Assembly: GCA_003427395.1 (NCBI GenBank)
Contig: BFEA01000004.1
Span: 3,056,276 to 3,111,035 of the forward strand
Length of the DNA: 54,760 bases
Origin: Chara braunii
Taxonomy: Eukaryota; Plantae; Charophyceae
Reading direction: 5' to 3'
Shown: positions 12,967 through 35,416 of the stretch, one piece after another
Layout: every line of letters starts with the position of its first letter
Numbering within the stretch: position 1 is the first letter of the stretch
Translations under genes and position numbers: made by a program
The notes under the pieces: model-generated
Seen by the model: the letters and a program-made list of their open reading frames with translations, nothing else
Told to the model about the DNA's origin: nothing
Databases searched by the model: none

Positions 12967-13444
12967 TTGTTTTTTGGGAAAATTGCATCGTACCCCGTTT
13001 AAGCCACCACTACCTTTCTCAATGTTAAGAAAAACTGTGATTTAACTTGAACCTACTCCGAAATGTCTGGAGGTCCCGTGGAGGCTCGGCCTCCTTAGCC
13101 CCATGTGGGACAACCCTTGAAAAAAAGAAAAAGGGAAAAAAAAATTCATGGAGATCACTGATTTCGGGTAACGCTCGCCATGAGGTCATACCCACACTAG
13201 TGTTTCCCGAAATAAATATGACCAGTAAAAGAGCGAAATCCTTATTGCTTTTTCTTTTCTATGTTCTATTTGTGCTCTCTCATCGAGGCATGGCGTGTTC
13301 CACGTTCTGCCATGGGTACCATTAACTAAGGGCCAAGTTTTTTTTTTCCCTCAGGATTACTTTTTTTTTTTTTTTTTTTTTTAAGAGTACCTTTTTTTTT
13401 CTTCATTTTTTTAGGAGTAAGAAAAACAAATTGAAACATCCAAC

Positions 13445-15120
13445 TGCCAAACTCAGTTGGTAAGGCATGCAAGTGACATTCATGAGGTTTTGGGTTCAAT
13501 CCCATTGGCCTCATGTACCTTATTGGGTAAGCTTGACGCCCACCACCTAGAGAGATCAACAGAAAATTCCCACGAGAAATGAAAGTTGAAAAAACACACC
13601 ATAAAAAAAAAAAAAAATTATATTTATAAACTATCATTCCAATGTTCATCCAATTCTAGAATTTTCAGTTTTATTTGATAAGAGTTTCCCCTTCCAACTA
13701 CATCTATTTGTTCAAAATGTAATGAAAGTCTGAACGAGTTTATGAAATATTTTAATAAAACTTTCATTCTACTACAACAAATATTTCTAATTGAGATTGA
13801 ATTAACCTATTTATGATTGAAAATCCTTACTTAAAATGATATTCCAATTAAAATATTTCATGAATTCATCCAAACTTTCATTTCATCTGTAGCATGGGTT
13901 CAAATAAGAAGGGATACCCCATTCTTAGAATGAAAGTTTTTAAGTAAAACAAAATTTTTTAAAATTCGAATGACATTTTTTAAGATCAACAGAAAAAATT
14001 CTCATAATTAAATAATCATTCTATTGTAAAATTACATTCCAAATTTCAAACTTTTATTCAATCTTAAAAAATTTCATTCCAATTTTTTAAAAAAAATTCT
14101 TACTTGAAAACTTTCCTTCCAAGAATGGTGTAACAAATATCTTCTAATTTATATTGAATCAACCTATTTATGATTGAAAATCCTTACTTAAAATGACATT
14201 CCAATTAAAATATTTCATGAACTCATCAAAACTTTCATTCCATCTCTAGCATGTAGTTCAAATAAGAAGGGATACCCCATTCTTGGAAGGAAAGTTTTTA
14301 ATTAAGACGAATTTTTTTTAAACTCGAATGACATTTTTTAAGATCAACAGAAAAAATTATCATAATTAAATAATCATTCTGTAGTAAAAGTACATTCTAA
14401 ATTTTAAATTTTCATTCAATCTTAAAAAATGTCATTCCAACAATGGTGTATCCCTTCTTATTTGAAATTCATGCTAGAGATGGAATGAAAGGCTAGATGA
14501 GGTCATAAAATATTTTAATTAGACTATCATTCTAAGTAAATATTTTCAGTCATAAATAGGTTAATCTAATCTAAATTAGAAGATATTTGTTGTAATAGAA
14601 TGAAAGTTTAATTAAAACATTTCATAAACTCGTTCAGACTTTCATTCCGTCTTGAATAAATAGATGTAGTTAGAAGGGAAAACTCATATTTAGACGGAAA
14701 CATATCAAATAAAACTGAAAATTTTAGAATTGAACGAACATTAGAATGGTAATTTATAAATATGAAGGATTATTTTCTTTTACAATGTTTTTCAACTTTC
14801 ATTTCTCGTGGGAATTTTTATGTTGATGGAATGAAATTTTGAAATTCACAATGTAATTTTACTAAAGAATGATTGTTTGATTTTGGAATTTTTTTCTTTT
14901 GATGTCATTGGCCCCCCCAAGTGGCATTAAGCAGAGACTTCTGATGTCAATAGGGAAAGGGGACCGGAGGGGAGACACAGTGACTCACCCATCGAAGAAG
15001 TTCGGTTCTGATGCTAAAGGCTGACCCCTAACCGGTATTACCCACCTGCTGGTGGGTGGAGCTCCCACATGTTCCCTCGTTGGAGGCTTAAGCACGGACG
15101 TGGCTGCTACGGGGTTCCCT
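13445..15120 (+). mobile_element. tRNA-derived SINE interrupted by a MITE cluster (13557-14901)
   Basis: A-box-like actcagttggtaa and B-box gggttcaatccc. The body resumes at ~14903 and matches the reverse complement of 24920-25110 (e.g. gctacggggttccc). Confidence 0.75.
13557..14901. mobile_element. Nested CAAC...GTTG MITEs: outer copy 13557-14901, inverted inner copy 13987-14825, plus a ~360-bp tandem duplication over the junction
   Basis: Outer copy flanked at|...|at. Inner copy reads aagat|caacag...tgttg|atggaatg, whereas intact copies read aagatggaatg. The junction aagatcaacagaaaaaatt recurs at ~14340. Confidence 0.8.
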
Positions 15121-15885: not shown

Positions 15886-16114
15886 GCTATAATGACAATA
15901 AAAACAAAGGCCTGAAAAATCGTCATGTCCAGATTCGACATGTAAGTGAATTTGTTGGACTTAAAAAATTAACCTTTTTTTTTTTTCTTTTTTTTCAATC
16001 GAAACGGTTTTTTAGGGCATCTGTTGAGTTTGGAACGATACAGAGAAGGCTTGCATGACCCATGTACAATAATGACATGCATAAATCAAAAAATTATCAA
16101 AATAAAACTAATAA

Positions 16115-24919: not shown

Positions 24920-25232
24920 ACGGGGAACCCCGTAGTAGCTAGAACCATGTTCACGGGAGAACATGCAGGGGCTGCTCCCAACGTGCAGGTGCGCGACACC
25001 GGCTAGGGGACAACCGGTAGCGTCGGGGACCATGCCAACATGTGCCTCCCCTCAGGTCCCCTCCCCTACGAACATCAACAGACTCTGCTCAATGTCGATC
25101 GGGGAATCTAGTGGTCTATCTCTAGGTGGCGGGCACCAAGCATGCCCAGGAAGGTACATGAGCCCAATGGAATGGGGATTGAACCCACGACCCCTGAATG
25201 CCACTTGCGAGCCTTACCAACTAAGTTAGGCC
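24920..25232 (-). mobile_element. tRNA-derived SINE, uninterrupted copy
   Basis: Minus strand begins ggcctaacttagttggtaagg...ggtcgtgggttcaatcccc (A/B boxes), then a body shared with 13445-15120. Confidence 0.78.
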
Positions 25233-25912
25233 TCTGGATCAGTTATTTTCCTCCGACACCGCTGCATGCAGGCCTCAACTTTCTGTTTTTTTGTTTGTTT
25301 GTTTGTTTGTTTGTTTGTTTGTTTGTTTTAACTTGATTCCTTATAAATAAATAAGCAGAGGCCGTGGACCTCACAATTCTACCCGGATGCACTGGCAGCA
25401 TCAGCCAGCTTAGCTTACAGGTTTTCACCTGCGGAAAGTTGAAAAAGCTACCAACTTTCCAGGTCCTACTCAACTTTCCTGTTGGACCTTGGTCCTGCCA
25501 ACCTAGTACTACAGAACGTTACTATTATACTATTGTCACTAAGTAGCTGACCATCCAATCAAGCCAGCTGCACCGGCTAACCCGCCTGATACCCTGACTG
25601 CTTAACATATTGCTACTGCTTCAGATCTACTCCCATAGATATGGCGAGATGACTGAGTAACTTACCAAAAAGTGCATACCTTGACCAGTTTCAAAAACAC
25701 TACTTGTTTATAATTTCCCTACCATCCGTACGGTACATTTTTACGCCTATTTCTGGGAATAACTCGGCCAAGAGGACCAGGAACACACCGGTCCCTTGCC
25801 TATCAGCCCTCTCCTAAATGGCCTACTGCGGCCCTATGCAACCGAGTGCCCTGGTTAATTGTCTGCCTACTCTGCCCTCTACTCAACCCGCCCTTACTCC
25901 ACAGCCAACTCT

Positions 25913-28900
25913 TTATGCTACTTTTATCGCTCCTCCTGTTTCGTTTGCTGTCCTAGTGGTGTCCACTTGTCTGGAGTCCATTAACCACCTTGATAGGACC
26001 AGACCCTTCATTGAGTGAATCGCGGCCAGCTGGTGGTTCTTCGCCCATGTGTGCAGAAACCCGCGGATCTGCCCCCGACTTCCTCTGCCCGACCTGGTTC
26101 TCCTTCTCCAATCCACGCGGATGGCTTGCCTCAGTCCCTGCTTTATGTGTCTCTTGATTTCCACATCAGAAAAAGAGCTTTTGTGGAATCTGGCTCTGTT
26201 CCTATCCGACCAGATGACTTCACAAATCAGACCTCTGACCATATGGGCTACATACCCCCAACCTCGCCTTCCACTCACGCCAGGAGGGAGAAAACCCAGT
26301 AACACCCACCTCTCATCCCAAAGAACATGCTGGCCCCCGAATTCCTTCCAATGATGAGCCCACCAATTCCATACTCGTTTTGATGTTGGGCGATCCCACC
26401 AGACATGACGGGTCGATTCGAATAACCATCTGCAACGTGTGCATCCCAGACTAACATCCATCCCTCTGCTGACCAACCATACGGCAGATGGGGTAACAAT
26501 CAGAGAGAGTAACCATAGGATACTTGCCTGTTTGCCATTCAGATGAGCTGCTAAAATCCTCCACAGTCTTAGGAAATCCTGACCTGAATGAGATAAGTCC
26601 TCACCCCAAACAGCCTGCCATCTTGGGACTGCAATTTGGGCAGGGCTCTTCAATAGCCTTTGAGATTGCTGATAGCCGTGCGAGGCTGAGTAGTCTATCA
26701 GTTTCGAGCTGGCTCGTCCCCTGCCGATCTCCAGCCCCAGGTTTGCGGGTCCATACCTAGTTGGCGCAGTTGAGTCTTGCCAACCCACGAGAGGACCTTG
26801 GTATGTGGTCTCTTGCTCCACGATTCAACCACCCTGACTTCTGCTGGATTACTCCAAATCATGACTGTATCTTCTTCTATTAGAGACAGGGTGTTGGAAG
26901 GACCGCAGCACCGCCATTTCTGTACCCTCCTGAACCCGCTTGGCAAGACCTCCAGCATCTTTCACACCTCGTTCGTCTCCATCCCCAGGTCCGAGACGTA
27001 CCATGTTCCCGGGGGGTCGACTCCCGTTGGGCCTAACAGCCTCACCTAGTCCTATGGGATAGCTTCAACTACTTGCGTCCAGTGTTCTTCCACCCTTCGC
27101 AGACCCTTGAGTGTCTCCTTCACCTCCGCCAGCGGTTTCCACCCTCCCAACCACGGGGACCACACGTCTTCGATCCGGACTATACCCCTCTTTATCCAAG
27201 CCAACCCAAATGTGCCTCTCGAGCCGTCCGCGAGTAAGGGGGAACCCGTACGGTCCAGGATATACTGGTTCTCGAAGAGTAGCTGGCCCATCACGTCTTC
27301 TTTCGTACACGGGGTGGTTTGCTCGTCCGGGGGCATCTTGTTCCATGCCTTGCGTATCGCTTCCTAGAAGCTTGACTTTAGTCTTTTCTTCCTGAGCGAC
27401 GGCATGAAGAAACACGCCCAGACGTCCTTGGGTCTGCAAAGGTCCCACTCCTTCATCAGGATCTGTTCCGCTAGTGCCACCCAATGCTCGGTTGGGCCTT
27501 GCATCACCGCCCTGGACACCCAGCTACGCAGTTGTGCCTGATTCCTTCGGGCTGGGTCTATGAGCCCCAAGCCCCCCTCCTCGCGTGGGAAGGACAAGGT
27601 ATCAACCGCCACCTTAGAAATGAAACCCTCTTCCTGACCGGCCCGAGGTTTCCATATGAAGCACGCCGCAAGCCTTCGAATTGCTTTTATAATGCCGCTT
27701 GCAAGCTCTCTCACCGTGGTGACAAACCACAGGATGGAAAAAAGGGCGACGCTGGCTACCAAGGCTCTTCCTACTAATGATAGGTGCCAAGCCGAGCCCC
27801 ACAACCTAAGTCGTGCAGCGATCCTCTATTGTAGATGGAACCCTTGACCCGACACATCAATCTGTAGACTTATCCAGATCCCCAGGAATCTCTCCTCCTC
27901 CCCTTCTTCAACCCTTCTCATGCCCCACTCCACCTTCAGCGAGAATTGAGTTGGTAAAAGGTAGGTGGATTTGTTCCAGTTGACCGTTGCCTCTGATAGC
28001 TCCGCGTACTCGCACATCACCCCTTTAAGGGCTGAGAGAGAGGAGACCGTATTCTCGCTGACTACGAACAGATCATCAACGAGAGCTTTGACCCTGCAGT
28101 CCATGCCGTTGTGTAACTGGATGCCTCTAATGTCGGGGTGTAACCGGATCTTGTTCAATAGAACCTCTAGTTGCAGGACAAAGATGAGCGGGGCGAGTGG
28201 ACACCCTTGACGTAGCGATCTTGATAATTGGAAGGGAGCGGACAGATGGTCGTTAATCATGATTGCCGACGAGGAGAAGGTGTACATCACAATGACCCAG
28301 GCGCAGAAGCTTTCGCCAAATCCCATTATCCGCAAGGTGCCTACCTTGTCGTATGCTTTCTCCAGGTCCAGAAGGCGAACCACCATATCACGGTTCTCCT
28401 CCTGGATCAACTCGAGGGATTCTATGGCTGTCACAATATTGTTAAAAATAGACCGCCCCTGCACAAAAGCCCCCTGGTCCTTCTCCACCAGCTCCGGAAG
28501 GTATTTGGACAACATGTGGGTCAACGCCTTCGCCAGAATCTTGTAAGAGACGTTTAGAAGGGAAATTGGACGCCAGTTTCGGACCTCCGATTTGTCTCCC
28601 TTCTTAAACATGACCGTGATCACCCCATGCGTCATGCCCTTGCCCAACTTACCCCCTACTAGCACCTCATTGTACAGTTCCACTAGTAACGGGTCAAGCA
28701 CCCCCCAGTTTGTTGCGTAAAACTCCACCGAGAGACCATCCACTCCTGGAGACTTTCCCTTCGCCATTGACTTCAGCGATTGGGAGAGCTCTTCCACGGT
28801 GAAAGTTCTGTCCAGGTCCAACTTGGCTGACGTATGCAGTTTCAAAGTAGTGCTGTCCCACATGTCTGTCCCACTTGACAGGTCCACGTTCACCCCGTCT

Positions 28901-30125
28901 TGCGGTCGTCTGGACGTCAGTATGTCCTCATAGTACATCCTTGCGTACTGGAGCATCCCCGTTGCGGAACAGGCTGGGGGTGCGGACTCAGCGAACGGGT
29001 GCTTAAGCTCAATCATCTGCTGCTGCAGACGGCTTGGTTGGAGTTTTTGGAATGTCTCCTTTGTCATTTTGTCGTGTGTCTCGATCCCCTTCACTTCCAG
29101 TACCTCCGTCCATTGCTTTTGCTTCTCCTCTTGGATGTTGTCCCACTCCGCAAGCCTCCTTTCACGTTCTGAGGCCCATACCAACCACGAGATAGGGTGA
29201 CCCTCCATGCGGTCTTCCGCCTCTTCCACCCTCTTCATACAGTCTGCCTCCCTTTTGTTCCTAGTCCTTGCCATAATTCTTGAGATCACGTTAAGCACCC
29301 CGGATGTAATAGCCAGGCCCCCGTCCAACCATTCTGCATTGGAGTTGAACAGATGTCTATCTCCCTCTCATTTGGTCATGTGATCTGACACCCATTCCCC
29401 CACTCTGGGGACCCTTAGCACCTCGTTGTTCAAGCGAAAGAAGCCTCTCCCTCTTTCGCAGCCCAAACTCAGTCTAAGATCCACCACTACCGGTTTGTGA
29501 TCGGAAATCGGGTGGCAGAAGTGCCTGACGGATGTGACTCTGTCCATCACCTGTTCTGAAAGAAAGAAGTAGTCAAGGCGCCTTCTGGTCACCGTCTGTC
29601 TATCCCACTGCAGATGAGAAGTCTAGGTGTAACCTAGGTCGTCTGGGTTCAGAGTCGGGAATGGGTCCACCAGCGTCAGCTCCGGGATGAATTCCAACAC
29701 TGTCCTCACGTCCCCCCTATTCGTTGTCGGTGCGCCGGGTCTCAGGGCTTCGTCTAGTGACACATTCAAGTCACCAGCAAGAAGCAGTCTGTCTGCCTTG
29801 GGGACAGGAAGCATCAGTCTTGCGAAGAATTTTTCCCTTTCCCCTGCCCCTGTCGGTGCATACACTGTCATGAAGGCTCATTCCTCCTTACCTATGAGCA
29901 CCTTGAGCCACACCCATTTGCCCCAGATATCCACCTCTGAGTCGATCACCTGAGCTTGTAGGTCCCTATGTAGCATGATGCCCACTCCACCCCGGGTACC
30001 TTGCGTCGGGGCCCACACTTGTGGGCCCTCCCACCATTGAGAGAACTCAATCAGTTTCTCTTTATCTAATTTCGTATTCGTCTTCTTTTACCCCTCCCGT
30101 TCGACACCGCTCGACTTTTATCCAT
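25913..30125 (-). pseudogene. LINE ORF2: APE endonuclease, reverse transcriptase, C-terminal zf-RVT; several stops and frameshifts
   Basis: APE: GGVGI, VYAP, LLAGDLN, RRLDYF, SDHKPV. RT: KSPGVDG, NWRPISLLNVSYKI, LDLEKAYDKV, LRQGCPLAP, LVDD. C-terminus: CTRC..ESTRHVWW. Confidence 0.93.
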
Positions 30126-31357
30126 GAAGTCTGCTTTCTTCCACTAGCTGTTGGATGCGGGCATTGTCTCCTTGCGTGTTGACCTGGTCTTGAGCCACCT
30201 GTGTAACTTCTGCTGTAGATCTGCCTGGTCTTCGTTGAGAACTTCGTTGGGAGCTTCCCCTGGATGAGTTGGCCTGGGACGACAGCGCCCGCCATTCCTC
30301 GGTAAGCTTCGTGGCAATGAAGGGCGAGTGCAAGTTCTCTTCTGCGATGAGTTTCTCGTTTGCATTCAGCAGGATCAAACCGGATACTCCTGGTAGAACC
30401 TTAATCTGTTCCAACTCTTGCATGTTGCGTTCCCTGATGAGGTCTATGTGGAACCAGCGAATGCCTGCCTGCGATAATGTGTGCGCCACTTCTGACGGGA
30501 TTCTGGCATCGAGGAGTGGAAAGTACATCTTCGTATAGCCTTTAACTGTTTCACAAATGATACTGGCCATGGTCGAATGGGGGATCAGCCTCACTGGTAT
30601 GTGTACCCCGTACATCTTCTTCGTTTCTTCGAAAATCATAGCTGGGGTTGGCGAACGGTTCACCTCCACCGAGGGAATCAGAGGAGCACCCTCCTCATCC
30701 GAGAGTGTGATAAAGCAGATACCCTCCGTCGTCCTGGTACAGATTAGCGGGATCAGACATCTCTGCACCGACTCCATTCTGTTTCTGTCCACTGTCTCCG
30801 CTCTGTGTCCCCTGTCCGGTATACGACTGTCCTCCCTTGTCTGTTTGTCTTTGCCTATGGTCCCTGATGCGGCTGAGCTTTCCATGGACGACGATTCACC
30901 TGATGATTCTATTTCCTCACAACACTCGCTTCCCCACCTCACTTTGGAGTGCAAGGAAAGAGATATCTTTGATTGCTCCACTTGTAAAGTCGGGTTCTCT
31001 TTCTGGTGCAAGTCTGTCCCCCTTCCCCGTAGCGTCTCCTCCCCTGGCCTTTCTGGAACGGTGTGACCCCACTTGCCATGTCTCCAAGTTTGCGAGTCAT
31101 CTCCCTTGTTCCTCGGACTGTCATCTTTTCAAGCATCCCACCTGGAGTTGCTAGCCTTGGTTCGTCTTCTGTTTGACCCGGCCCTGCTTTCCACGGTAGA
31201 AGCGTGGAACGGAGCCAGCAAACTCCCAGGGTACATACCTGCAAGTACCGAAGTGCCACCAGGTTTCGAGTTCATAGGAACATCTCAGCAGACGGAGTGT
31301 TCCGCTGGATCCGCTCTTCCTCAAGATCCACAAGACTCAGGAAGGTGTAGAGGGGGG
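30118..31357 (-). pseudogene. LINE ORF1, C-terminal part
   Basis: 297-aa ORF 30118..31011 directly upstream of ORF2, its end overlapping the putative ORF2 ATG. The frame extends upstream through STVESRAGSNRRRT. Confidence 0.65.
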
Positions 31358-33153
31358 TAACATGCGAGAATTGAAGACAGATAGCAACAGAGACAAGAGA
31401 ATACCTCGCTTACTACACTCTCGTCCGACTCTCTGCATCCGGAAGCAGGGAACAGGGAAGGGCAGGGGAGACACCAGGCGGGGCCCGCGACTCCTAATAG
31501 CTAGATCGTGAGCAGACAACAGGGAGGAAGGATACCAGGAGGCAAAAACATGGATAATCCGTGCAGAACCGGGAGTGACACACCGCCGCGTCCGCCTCAA
31601 TCAAGGGAAGACGTATCCAGAGTTAGAGAGTCGGTGAGCAGGTGCTACGATGATGGGATGTGTCTAGAAGGAGACAATTTGGGAAGGCTGGTCGAAGACG
31701 AGGAAGGGAAAAGATTTGTTGTGAACGAGGTGATAGACGAAGTGAAGGAACAATGACTTAAAGACAGATCAGTTATAGTAACGTTCTAGGGCGAAGTCAA
31801 GAATCTGTCGAGGTCTGTTAAGGAGGACCTCATAAGAGCGTATTAAGATGGATGGACTGCGGAACGACTATTTCAACCTAAGGCAAGGAGGGGGAGAGTG
31901 AAGTTTGAAGGTCAAAACGTCGCCTCATACGTAGCGAAATCCAAGGAAATCGTTGAATGGCTGATTCGTCAGAAGGAACTGAAGATAAAGCTGGAGCAAA
32001 TAGAATACATGGTGACGTTCAAACCCAGGCTGTCAAAACAAGAACTCCAGGATGTTCACACCCCGGAAGCAGAGACAAGGTTCTGGATTATGGCCCTGAG
32101 AGTCCCGCTAGATGCCTATTACTACCTGAAGGGTGCGGTGATAGCCTGCTTTGGGGAAGTGCTAGTCGCGCACAGCCCTGAATACGACAAAGATCGGCCG
32201 AAGCTCATGAACGTTAAGTTTGACATGCCCCCGGCAGCAAGAGGCAACATTGAGGATGAGTTGGTTATCGAATCTCCGAAGGGGTCCCGCTGGAAGGTGG
32301 AGATTGCGACACCTTACACGGACTGGTGCAGGCGATGTAGATGGTACTTCTATACGGAAGACACCTGTCCAAGAATTAGGATGGAGTTGGGAAGAAGGGG
32401 CAATGGCGAACGGCAGGGGGGACATAGAGCTCGGTACCGTGAACATCTGCTAAATCAAGTACGGGAAAACAGGGAAGAGGCAGAACCCAGGAGAGATGAC
32501 CATCCACCCCCAGCTGGGAGAGGGCCTCAGGAGCAAAGTACCAGCAATGGACAGCGGCAACGAGAGGCAGGAGGGACCACACAAAGCAGGGAGGGGAGAA
32601 CCAGGGCGCAACACCTCACGACTGACACAGGTATTTAAGTCCCGGGACTGTAGGCTCGGGGAGGACCATCGCAGCAGAACCAGCGGCAGGAAGCGTCGCC
32701 TTGGGATCTCAGCGGAGTGAATGGTCACTGGGAGGAACCTCAGTGGGCCGATCAGACATGGGGTAATGATCAGAGACCAGGATACGGAGTACCCCTGATG
32801 CAACCTTGGATCCTCAGAAGAGATTGGCCAGGTGGCAATATCGAGATTGGCACAGAGGGCTATGGGCAGCATGGGGCAATGGTGCCAGGCAGGGGAAGCC
32901 CGGTCCACACGAATTGTCAAGCATGGCAGAACATGCAGCAGTTTCACGGAGAGTCTTACACGGACGGTGGCTACCTACTCCCTAGGGACGCGTACCCCCC
33001 TGCTAATCAAGGTCAGGTGTCACACCCAAAACCGCGTTACCCGTCGGATACCTATGATTGGAGATGCTGGGCTCCGCTGGGGCAAAACAGAGGTCCCCCG
33101 GACCCGGACCTTTCCAGGTGGGAAAGCAGGGCCGGGTCAAACAGAAGACGAAC
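31358..33153 (+). pseudogene. Inverted 5' segment of the LINE: 5' UTR and ORF1 N-terminus with a degenerate zinc knuckle
   Basis: ORFs 31508..31756 and 31898..32638 read FWIMALRVPL...WCRRCRWYFYTEDTCP (CX2CX4[H>Y]X4C), the layout of plant-type L1 ORF1. Confidence 0.75.
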
Positions 33154-33549
33154 TTTCTGTTTTCGGCATGGAGGCCGCAACTTTCTTTTTTAGGCCTGCC
33201 AGAGCAAAATGGCTGGCGGCTTTTTGGCGCGCAGGGCGTTCCGGGCCCCGAGAAAAAGGGGCTCGGAGGTACTAGCGGCATGGGCCGCAGATGCAATTTC
33301 CCCTTGTTTTCTTTTGCCTTTTCGAGGGGTCGGCGGCCTTGACACGCCGTGTGATAGGGCTGCCTGCACTTTTGTCCCCTTCACATCTGATGAGTGCCGC
33401 CCCGAGGCCCTAGAGATATAGCTCTTTCGTTAGTGGTATGGCGCGGCCGGGTCCAAGTAGAGGGCCTAGCTAATTCAGACAGGATTCGAATTCATGTCTC
33501 TATTTCAACAGCTCGTCTGCATTTCACACGCGCATTTGTCTTCTCGGGG

Positions 33550-33781: not shown

Positions 33782-33821
33782 NNNNNNNNNNNNNNNNNNN
33801 NNNNNNNNNNNNNNNNNNNNN

Positions 33822-34693: not shown

Positions 34694-34830
34694 GGCCCGA
34701 GGTTTCCATATGAAGCGCGCCGCAAGCCTTCGAACTGCTTTTATAATGCCGCTTGCAAGCTCTCTCACCGTGGTGACAAACCACAGGATGGAAAAAAGGG
34801 CGACGCTGGCTACCAAGGCTCTTCCTACTA
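34694..34830 (-). other. LINE RT fragment attached via the adapter (chimeric read)
   Basis: Near-identical to 27640-27776 (two visible mismatches); sits between the adapter and an N gap. Confidence 0.9.
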
Positions 34831-35416
34831 NNNNNNNNNNNNNNNNNNNNNNNNNNNNNNNNNNNNNNNNNNNNNNNNNNNNNNNNNNNNNNNNNNNNNN
34901 NNNNNNNNNNNNNNNNNNNNNNNNNNNNNNNNNNNNNNGATCGAGAGGTGGAGAGGGTCGGAATGACAGCCAATCAGGGGGAAGGATGTGGGGACTGATG
35001 AATTGCAGAGAAAGAACGGCAAGGCAACAGGTTAAGGAATGCAGGTCGTGTAGGGGATCGCGACAAGTTGGGGAAAAAAGAGATTGCAAGGCAGGAAGAG
35101 GGGCTAGGCACGGAGGGAGGGGAACATGGTGTAAGGGAATGAGAGAGCAGGATAATAAGGAAGGGCCGGAATAACGAGAGGGATAAGGTGAATGTGGATA
35201 TGGCGATGCAGGTGATTGAGAGAGGGCAATGGAGAGAGAAAGAGATCGAAGAGGATGGCAAAGGAATGGAGAAAGACGGGAAGAGATGGCAGAAGAGGAT
35301 GGGGAAAATCGGATTGCTGGGAGGAAGATCGGACGGGGGGATGGATGGCACAAGTTGAAAGATGGATTCGCACAGGCGGAAGAGAGGGAATGGAGAAGAA
35401 AGAAAGGGAAAAAAAG

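Follow-up and report, generated by a model that had tools for sequence, protein, structure and literature searches.

Introduction

In mammals, L1 long interspersed nuclear elements (LINEs) with an inverted 5' part are reportedly explained by the twin-priming model of Ostertag and Kazazian (2001). L1-type LINEs of plants and the green lineage carry APE, reverse transcriptase (RT) and zf-RVT domains and a separate open reading frame 1 (ORF1). Here we describe an L1-like LINE of the charophyte alga Chara braunii at positions 25277-33163 of a 54,760-nt stretch of contig BFEA01000004.1 (assembly GCA_003427395.1, forward-strand positions 3,056,276 to 3,111,035; this whole stretch is called the window below). 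The element most probably represents a single insertion that was resolved by classical twin priming, with no template jump in the inverted arm. Twin priming here is a known mechanism and not a new one; the lineage is new as far as our literature search reached: of 106 open-access papers that mention twin priming, the 40 ranked highest were all on mammalian or human-cell systems, and none of the 16 that also mention plants contained a case from plants or algae.

The Chara insertion shares its main features with 5'-inverted mammalian L1 copies (PMC2912911, PMC5668948). A tailed 3' arm and an inverted 5' arm come from one element, and one target-site duplication (TSD) bounds both arms (13 bp in Chara, 14-16 bp typical in human). 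Both have a T-rich first-strand nick, a second primer with microhomology to the RNA site inside the element, and a short duplicated stretch where the two arms meet. In 5'-inverted L1, microhomology at the 5' junction is frequent (PMC2912911) and the junction duplication is a documented feature (PMC5668948); 5' inversion is reported for ~18% of human L1 (PMC5668948). The differences lie in the host, which is a streptophyte alga, in the RT, which according to the RT match list is only ~30-35% identical to that of vertebrate L1, and in the tail, which is (AAAC)n and not pure poly(A). In addition, a 5' untranslated region (UTR) and one half of ORF1, which is very long (~880 codons), lie in the inverted arm of the Chara element.

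Results

Two arms of one LINE on opposite strands

The element is 7.9 kb long and contains no runs of N; the coordinates of its parts are collected in Table 1. For comparison we used five loci from the same Chara genome, namely L001 and the full-length relatives L002-L005 (65-70% DNA identity). L001, obtained with the RT query, is a 92-94% identical copy but only an internal fragment of 1.4 kb. Queries with ORF1 and with the post-junction sequence returned 46-72% relatives only, and P0129, which covers the junction region, is a spliced gene model that skips the junction.

A two-arm model was built in a local script by joining the plus arm to the reverse-complemented minus arm. It was collinear on a single strand with each of L002-L005, which indicates that both arms are parts of one LINE type. 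Direct matches and the collinearity with these four relatives place ORF1 on the plus strand and the endonuclease, RT and 3' UTR on the minus strand. An initial annotation of this DNA, made from the letters alone, had described a single LINE insertion whose 5' part is inverted and which a TSD encloses, with the 3' part on the minus and the 5' part on the plus strand. This description is supported, and the orientation of the parts is confirmed by the collinearity with the relatives. The boundary that had been drawn between the arms at 31357/31358 was not confirmed; the composition of the DNA changes at 31194.

Target-site duplication and A-rich tail

The 13-bp direct repeat that had been read at the two ends, AACTTTCTGTTTT, is exact and occurs as exactly two exact copies in the window, one at each end of the element. 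A further copy with 1 mismatch lies at 33179-33191, where the chance expectation is 0.27 matches at ≤1 mismatch in the window. The tail, earlier described as (GTTT)n, was recovered as a period-4 array of TGTT/GTTT with 11 units at 25284-25328, which begins within the TSD and reads (AAAC)n on the minus strand. The conserved 3'-UTR end of the family (TTGTGAGGTCC.CGGCCTC), common to L002 and L003, comes before the tail. The T-rich target end abutting the A-rich tail had rightly been recognized as a signature of twin priming. At the other end, where there is no tail, the inverted arm stops precisely at the 13-mer of the tail end, repeated here without a mismatch. The microhomology proposed there was also confirmed: the trinucleotide AAC at 33151-33153 belongs to both the inverted-repeat arm and the TSD, although 3 nt alone are weak evidence.

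Before the insertion, the target comprised two tandem 28-nt units (25262-25289 and 33164-33191) that are identical at 24 of 28 positions and each end in AACTTTCT(G/T)TTTT, and the LINE was inserted after the first unit. As both flanks are units of one tandem repeat, they were adjoining before the insertion and represent one locus.

Among the relatives, L002 and L003 have A25 tails and the tail of L004 is A22(CAAA)n. The earlier characterization of the element as a non-poly(A)-tailed LINE was thus overstated, and to judge from these sequences the family is L1-like with poly(A) or A-rich tails. The 14-nt candidate TSDs of L002 and L003 begin with AAAA (AAAACATTGGCAGA; AAAATCTAAGGCCC). In both tails and candidate TSDs the Chara relatives are like plant and green-lineage L1-type LINEs.

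Inversion junction and 33-nt duplication

The outermost 33 nt of the inverted arm (33121-33153) form a perfect inverted repeat with 31160-31192 (33/33 identical), in full agreement with the initial annotation. That annotation had explained the repeat by a second primer that started internally, copied 33 nt and then jumped at a gtgg microhomology, and the comparison with the relatives speaks against this jump. Both L003 and L002 read without break from the plus arm through the 33 nt into the minus arm at 31159, in protein as well as DNA alignments. The L003 protein (...HPRPKYPSATYDWR...VSRREASATSTRRRHRGIESWWDAQGEES...) aligns without a large gap to the plus arm through 33153, resumed at 31159. 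At the DNA level, L003 TCCAGGCGTGAGGCGAGCG... matches TTCCAGGTGGGAAAGCAGG..., so that the supposed jump point falls inside a conserved, unbroken stretch.

Family copies had been expected to show ccaggt followed by cccccctctacacc. What the relatives show is a contiguous homologue of ...ttccaggt/gggaaagcagg..., in which CCAGGT continues as the homologue of GGGAAAGCAGG (31159 downward). The global protein scores (BLOSUM62) of the continuous model versus the join from 33120 to 31357 were 261 vs 202 with L003 and 104 vs 82 with L002. This join requires a gap of 55 residues, which is exactly the 165 nt at 31193-31357, and the spacing between anchors in the relatives is shorter than it implies by 167 nt (L002), 167 nt (L003) and 156 nt (L004). 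The reading frame across the join was also considered as a test and discarded: the frame is preserved, yet it is kept in either model and cannot discriminate between them because 165 = 3 x 55. As the relatives show no break at the proposed jump point, the plus arm reads as uninterrupted LINE up to 33153 and the 33 nt as an ordinary duplication at the inversion junction.

The 165 nt beside the junction

The purine fraction on the plus strand changes from 0.33 to 0.57 at 31192/31193, and the best composition change point is 31194. By strand composition, the junction is placed at 31192/31193. No mark of a junction was seen at 31357/31358, and the 165 nt between the two positions match the plus arm in composition: their plus-strand purine fraction is 0.57, compared with 0.53-0.66 for the plus arm and 0.33-0.49 for the minus arm. 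We further applied a strand-sense test with Markov models of order 0-2 trained on known sense strands. The log-likelihood ratio of the 165 nt for "sense on plus" was +6.9 to +7.3; known sense windows gave means of 6.9-8.3, with 91-93% above 0, and against the value of +7.2 for the 165 nt their mean was 8.1 (standard deviation 5.9). The relatives lack a counterpart of the 165 nt at the position to which the initial annotation had assigned them. The 165 nt are most likely the 5'-most UTR part of the inverted arm, an assignment read from composition, and the arm would then comprise 1,961 nt with a 357-nt stretch of 5' UTR.

The 165 nt and the 192-nt UTR were also compared by sensitive blastn with the window and with ~100 kb of fetched Chara loci; neither gave a significant match, and the 165 nt matched no Rfam family. 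An exact-pattern scan for the 31357/31358 junction gave no matches in metagenome contigs, where Chara DNA is not expected. The possibility that the 165 nt are an intron was rejected, as no GT...AG boundaries fit the observed join.

The 5' UTRs of the relatives are mutually unalignable. The candidate TSDs of L002 (8272-17641) and L003 (8103-14370) precede the ORF1 ATG by 1.7-1.9 kb, and L002 (8325-8550) and L004 (8445-8674) have in common a segment close to the 5' end (80% identity) that lies at comparable distances upstream of the ATG. From these two observations the 5' UTRs of the relatives appear long. The second complementary DNA (cDNA 2) of the present insertion probably stopped short of the RNA 5' end.

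Coding content

The RT ORF is identical to a protein annotated in the public assembly, the 482-aa P0001. Its match list is headed by Chara LINE proteins, its closest relatives being dozens of C. braunii proteins, and then contains diverse metazoan LINE RTs, including "LINE-1 reverse transcriptase homolog". Upstream of the RT on the minus strand, three pieces separated by stops gave weak Exo_endo_phos matches (E=0.05-0.14) in the correct profile order, and the relative protein P0004 carries a clear Exo_endo_phos domain (E=2e-15). The plus strand at 31847-32635 encodes an ORF1-like protein with 49-72% identity to Chara relatives, and the ORF1 ATG at 31550 agrees with the gene starts and N-termini of the relatives. 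With an ORF1, a weak APE endonuclease match and an RT, the element is classed on its predicted content as an L1-like LINE. The order ORF1, putative APE, RT is that of plant and green-lineage L1-type LINEs, and zf-RVT is present in the Chara relatives. Unlike in those elements, ORF1 of the Chara LINE has no Pfam match, and ORF2 follows in the same frame after a conserved stop.

ORF1 (~880 codons from the ATG) and ORF2 share one frame, with the separating stop at ~30120 (minus strand) and kept at the same place in L002 and L003. This arrangement suggests readthrough or reinitiation rather than a frameshift. The single frame that carries ORF1 and ORF2 holds 15 in-frame stops across 27048-32651 in both arms. 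Nine of them could be polarized against the relatives: 6 are changes from TGG to TGA/TAG (G-to-A on the sense strand), 2 from CAG to TAG and 1 from GAA to TAA.

Table 1 Features of the 5'-inverted LINE and its target in the window
Feature	Positions	Strand	Remarks
Left TSD copy, 13 bp, AACTTTCTGTTTT	25277-25289	+	Last 4-6 nt (TGTTTT) merge into the tail array
A-rich LINE tail, ~(AAAC)10 on the minus strand	25290-25329	-	From the array and comparison with relatives
Direct (3') arm: 3' UTR, ORF2 C-terminal region, RT, APE-like endonuclease, C-terminal half of ORF1	25290-31192	-	
RT region	27829-29367	-	RVT_1, E=4.9e-24
Putative APE-type endonuclease region, interrupted by in-frame stops	29371-30087	-	Weak Pfam matches, profile order correct
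Inner of the two copies of the duplicated 33-nt LINE segment, where the direct arm begins	31160-31192	-	
165 nt adjoining the junction, in all likelihood the 5'-most UTR part of the inverted arm	31193-31357	+	Most likely sense on plus
Inverted (5') arm: 5' UTR, ORF1 ATG at 31550, N-terminal ~535 ORF1 codons	31193-33153	+	
Outer copy of the 33-nt duplicated segment	33121-33153	+	Last 3 nt (AAC) common to the TSD
Right TSD copy, 13 bp	33151-33163	+	
Second 28-nt unit of the target tandem repeat	33164-33191	+	24/28 identical to 25262-25289

Neighbouring sequence

A tRNA-like, SINE (short interspersed nuclear element)-like repeat lies just left of the insertion at 25113-25239 (T-arm GGTTCAATCCC, minus strand). 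Further copies were seen at 13438-13553 (79%) and 1821-1880 (88%), and ARAGORN called no tRNA in the repeat. A decayed match to U6 small nuclear RNA (16007-16106, 53 bits, AT-rich context) is probably a pseudogene.

Discussion

Following the established twin-priming model, the observed structure could have arisen by the following order of events. The endonuclease of the element would have nicked the plus strand after ...CTGTTTT, and the T-rich 3' end would have primed on the A-rich (AAAC)n tail, with up to 4-6 nt shared and the G in phase with the array, giving cDNA 1, the minus-sense arm at 25290-31192. The opposite strand would then have been nicked 13 nt away, and its 3' end, ...AAAGTT, may have annealed through its GTT to an AAC within that RNA, midway along ORF1. 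From there the second end would have primed cDNA 2 toward the RNA 5' end and produced the plus-sense arm ending at 33153. If cDNA 1 extended 30-33 nt beyond the second priming site, this stretch would be present twice, as it is at 31160-31192 and 33121-33153. Finally, the two cDNA ends would have been joined at 31192/31193. Beside the priming site, the sense strand of the LINE reads AAACAGAA (33139-33146, 4 nt upstream of the AAC), which matches the TSD core TTCTGTTT (25281-25288 / 33155-33162) exactly in reverse complement; the chance of such an 8-mer match near the junction is roughly estimated, post hoc, at 0.002-0.005. At this spot, where the second primer began, the RNA could have paired with the strand that was nicked first.

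An unlikely alternative, though one to be taken seriously, is that twin priming took place but that the 165 nt are filler at the junction, either because cDNA 2 switched template from the LINE RNA 5' end at 31358 to another RNA or because DNA was captured during end joining. Insertions at L1 inversion junctions are known (PMC5668948), and the 165 nt match nothing in the sequences searched. Moreover, continuity of the LINE at 31357/31358 cannot be shown because the 5' UTRs of the relatives are unalignable. L1 template-switch products, such as U6/L1 chimeras and copies with extra 5' sequence, exemplify the process that the initial annotation invoked for the 33 nt and would offer a possible origin of the 165 nt. 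Unlike in such products, the 33 nt are explained without a switch, and no donor of the 165 nt was found in the window or the fetched loci. Against filler, the 165 nt have a composition and a strand asymmetry that are typical for this LINE's sense strand and continuous with the plus arm, they lack an Rfam match, and 165 nt would be long for junction filler.

It is much less probable that the structure is an artefact or a composite, be it through the mis-assembly of two LINE copies, through two separate insertion events or through an inversion that later affected the 5' part of a normal insertion. The sequence is a draft short-read scaffold with gaps that lie 0.6 and 1.7 kb to the right, and a 137-nt fragment of the same LINE, 98.5% identical, adjoins a gap. 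This fragment (34694-34830) corresponds to 27640-27776, just downstream of the RT and on the same strand, and runs up to the N gap 34831-34938; either another, almost identical copy or an error of scaffolding could account for it. The element itself, however, contains no Ns. Three features make these explanations unlikely, namely the exact match of the 13-mer at which the tail-less inverted arm stops, the membership of both flanks in one 28-nt repeat as sister units, and the 33-nt duplication: a separate insertion would require its own tail and TSD, and a simple inversion makes no 33-nt duplication.

Barely credible is the model in which the arms meet at 31357/31358, the family carries the 165 nt between ...CCAGGT and GGAAAGC... 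(CCAGGT followed by CCCCCCTCTACACC..., with the 165 nt in minus orientation upstream of GGAAAGCAGG), and the second cDNA, initiated 165 nt downstream, extended for 33 nt before jumping at a short microhomology: it is geometrically possible and keeps the frame, the 165 nt being a multiple of 3, but the relatives lack a counterpart of the 165 nt and are contiguous across the jump point, the jump would have to recreate their arrangement by chance by exactly removing a family-specific 165-nt insert at whose other edge cDNA 1 must also stop exactly, the 165 nt on the minus strand hold 2 stops in frame 0 and are antisense-like in composition, and their lack of GT...AG ends means that splicing cannot rescue the join.

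Several points weigh against a single insertion resolved by twin priming, or against parts of it. Composition and parsimony are the grounds for assigning the 165 nt and their orientation, as the full-length relatives fetched are only 65-70% identical and none exceeds 90%. The short-read scaffold has gaps nearby, at 33782-33821 (within a (CT)n tract) and 34831-34938, and ORFs that cross the inner and outer junctions gave no independent contig on record in exact-protein look-ups. In principle, the 13-bp TSD could be the remnant of a third tandem unit combined with a 15-bp target deletion. Finally, the frame holds 15 stops, but the 33-nt duplication and the 13-bp TSD show 0 differences in 46 duplicated nt, so the source RNA may have been defective already and mobilized in trans.

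Insertion by twin priming would show that a well-characterized by-product of mammalian L1 integration, with its 5' inversion, junction duplication and priming microhomology, also occurs with an L1-like element in a charophyte alga. Two linked proposals go beyond this single locus and, taken jointly, are unlikely. The first is that twin priming is a regular L1-type outcome in streptophyte algae and an ancient property of APE LINEs, not a peculiarity of mammalian L1. The second is that the internal site was chosen through complementarity of AAACAGAA in the RNA to the other target strand (TTCTGTTT), so that pairing of the RNA with both target strands guided the second priming. If a genome-wide census confirms the finding, priming of the RT from the second-strand nick would be conserved in the integration of APE-type LINEs, and 5'-inverted copies would need to be accounted for in the repeat annotation of Chara.

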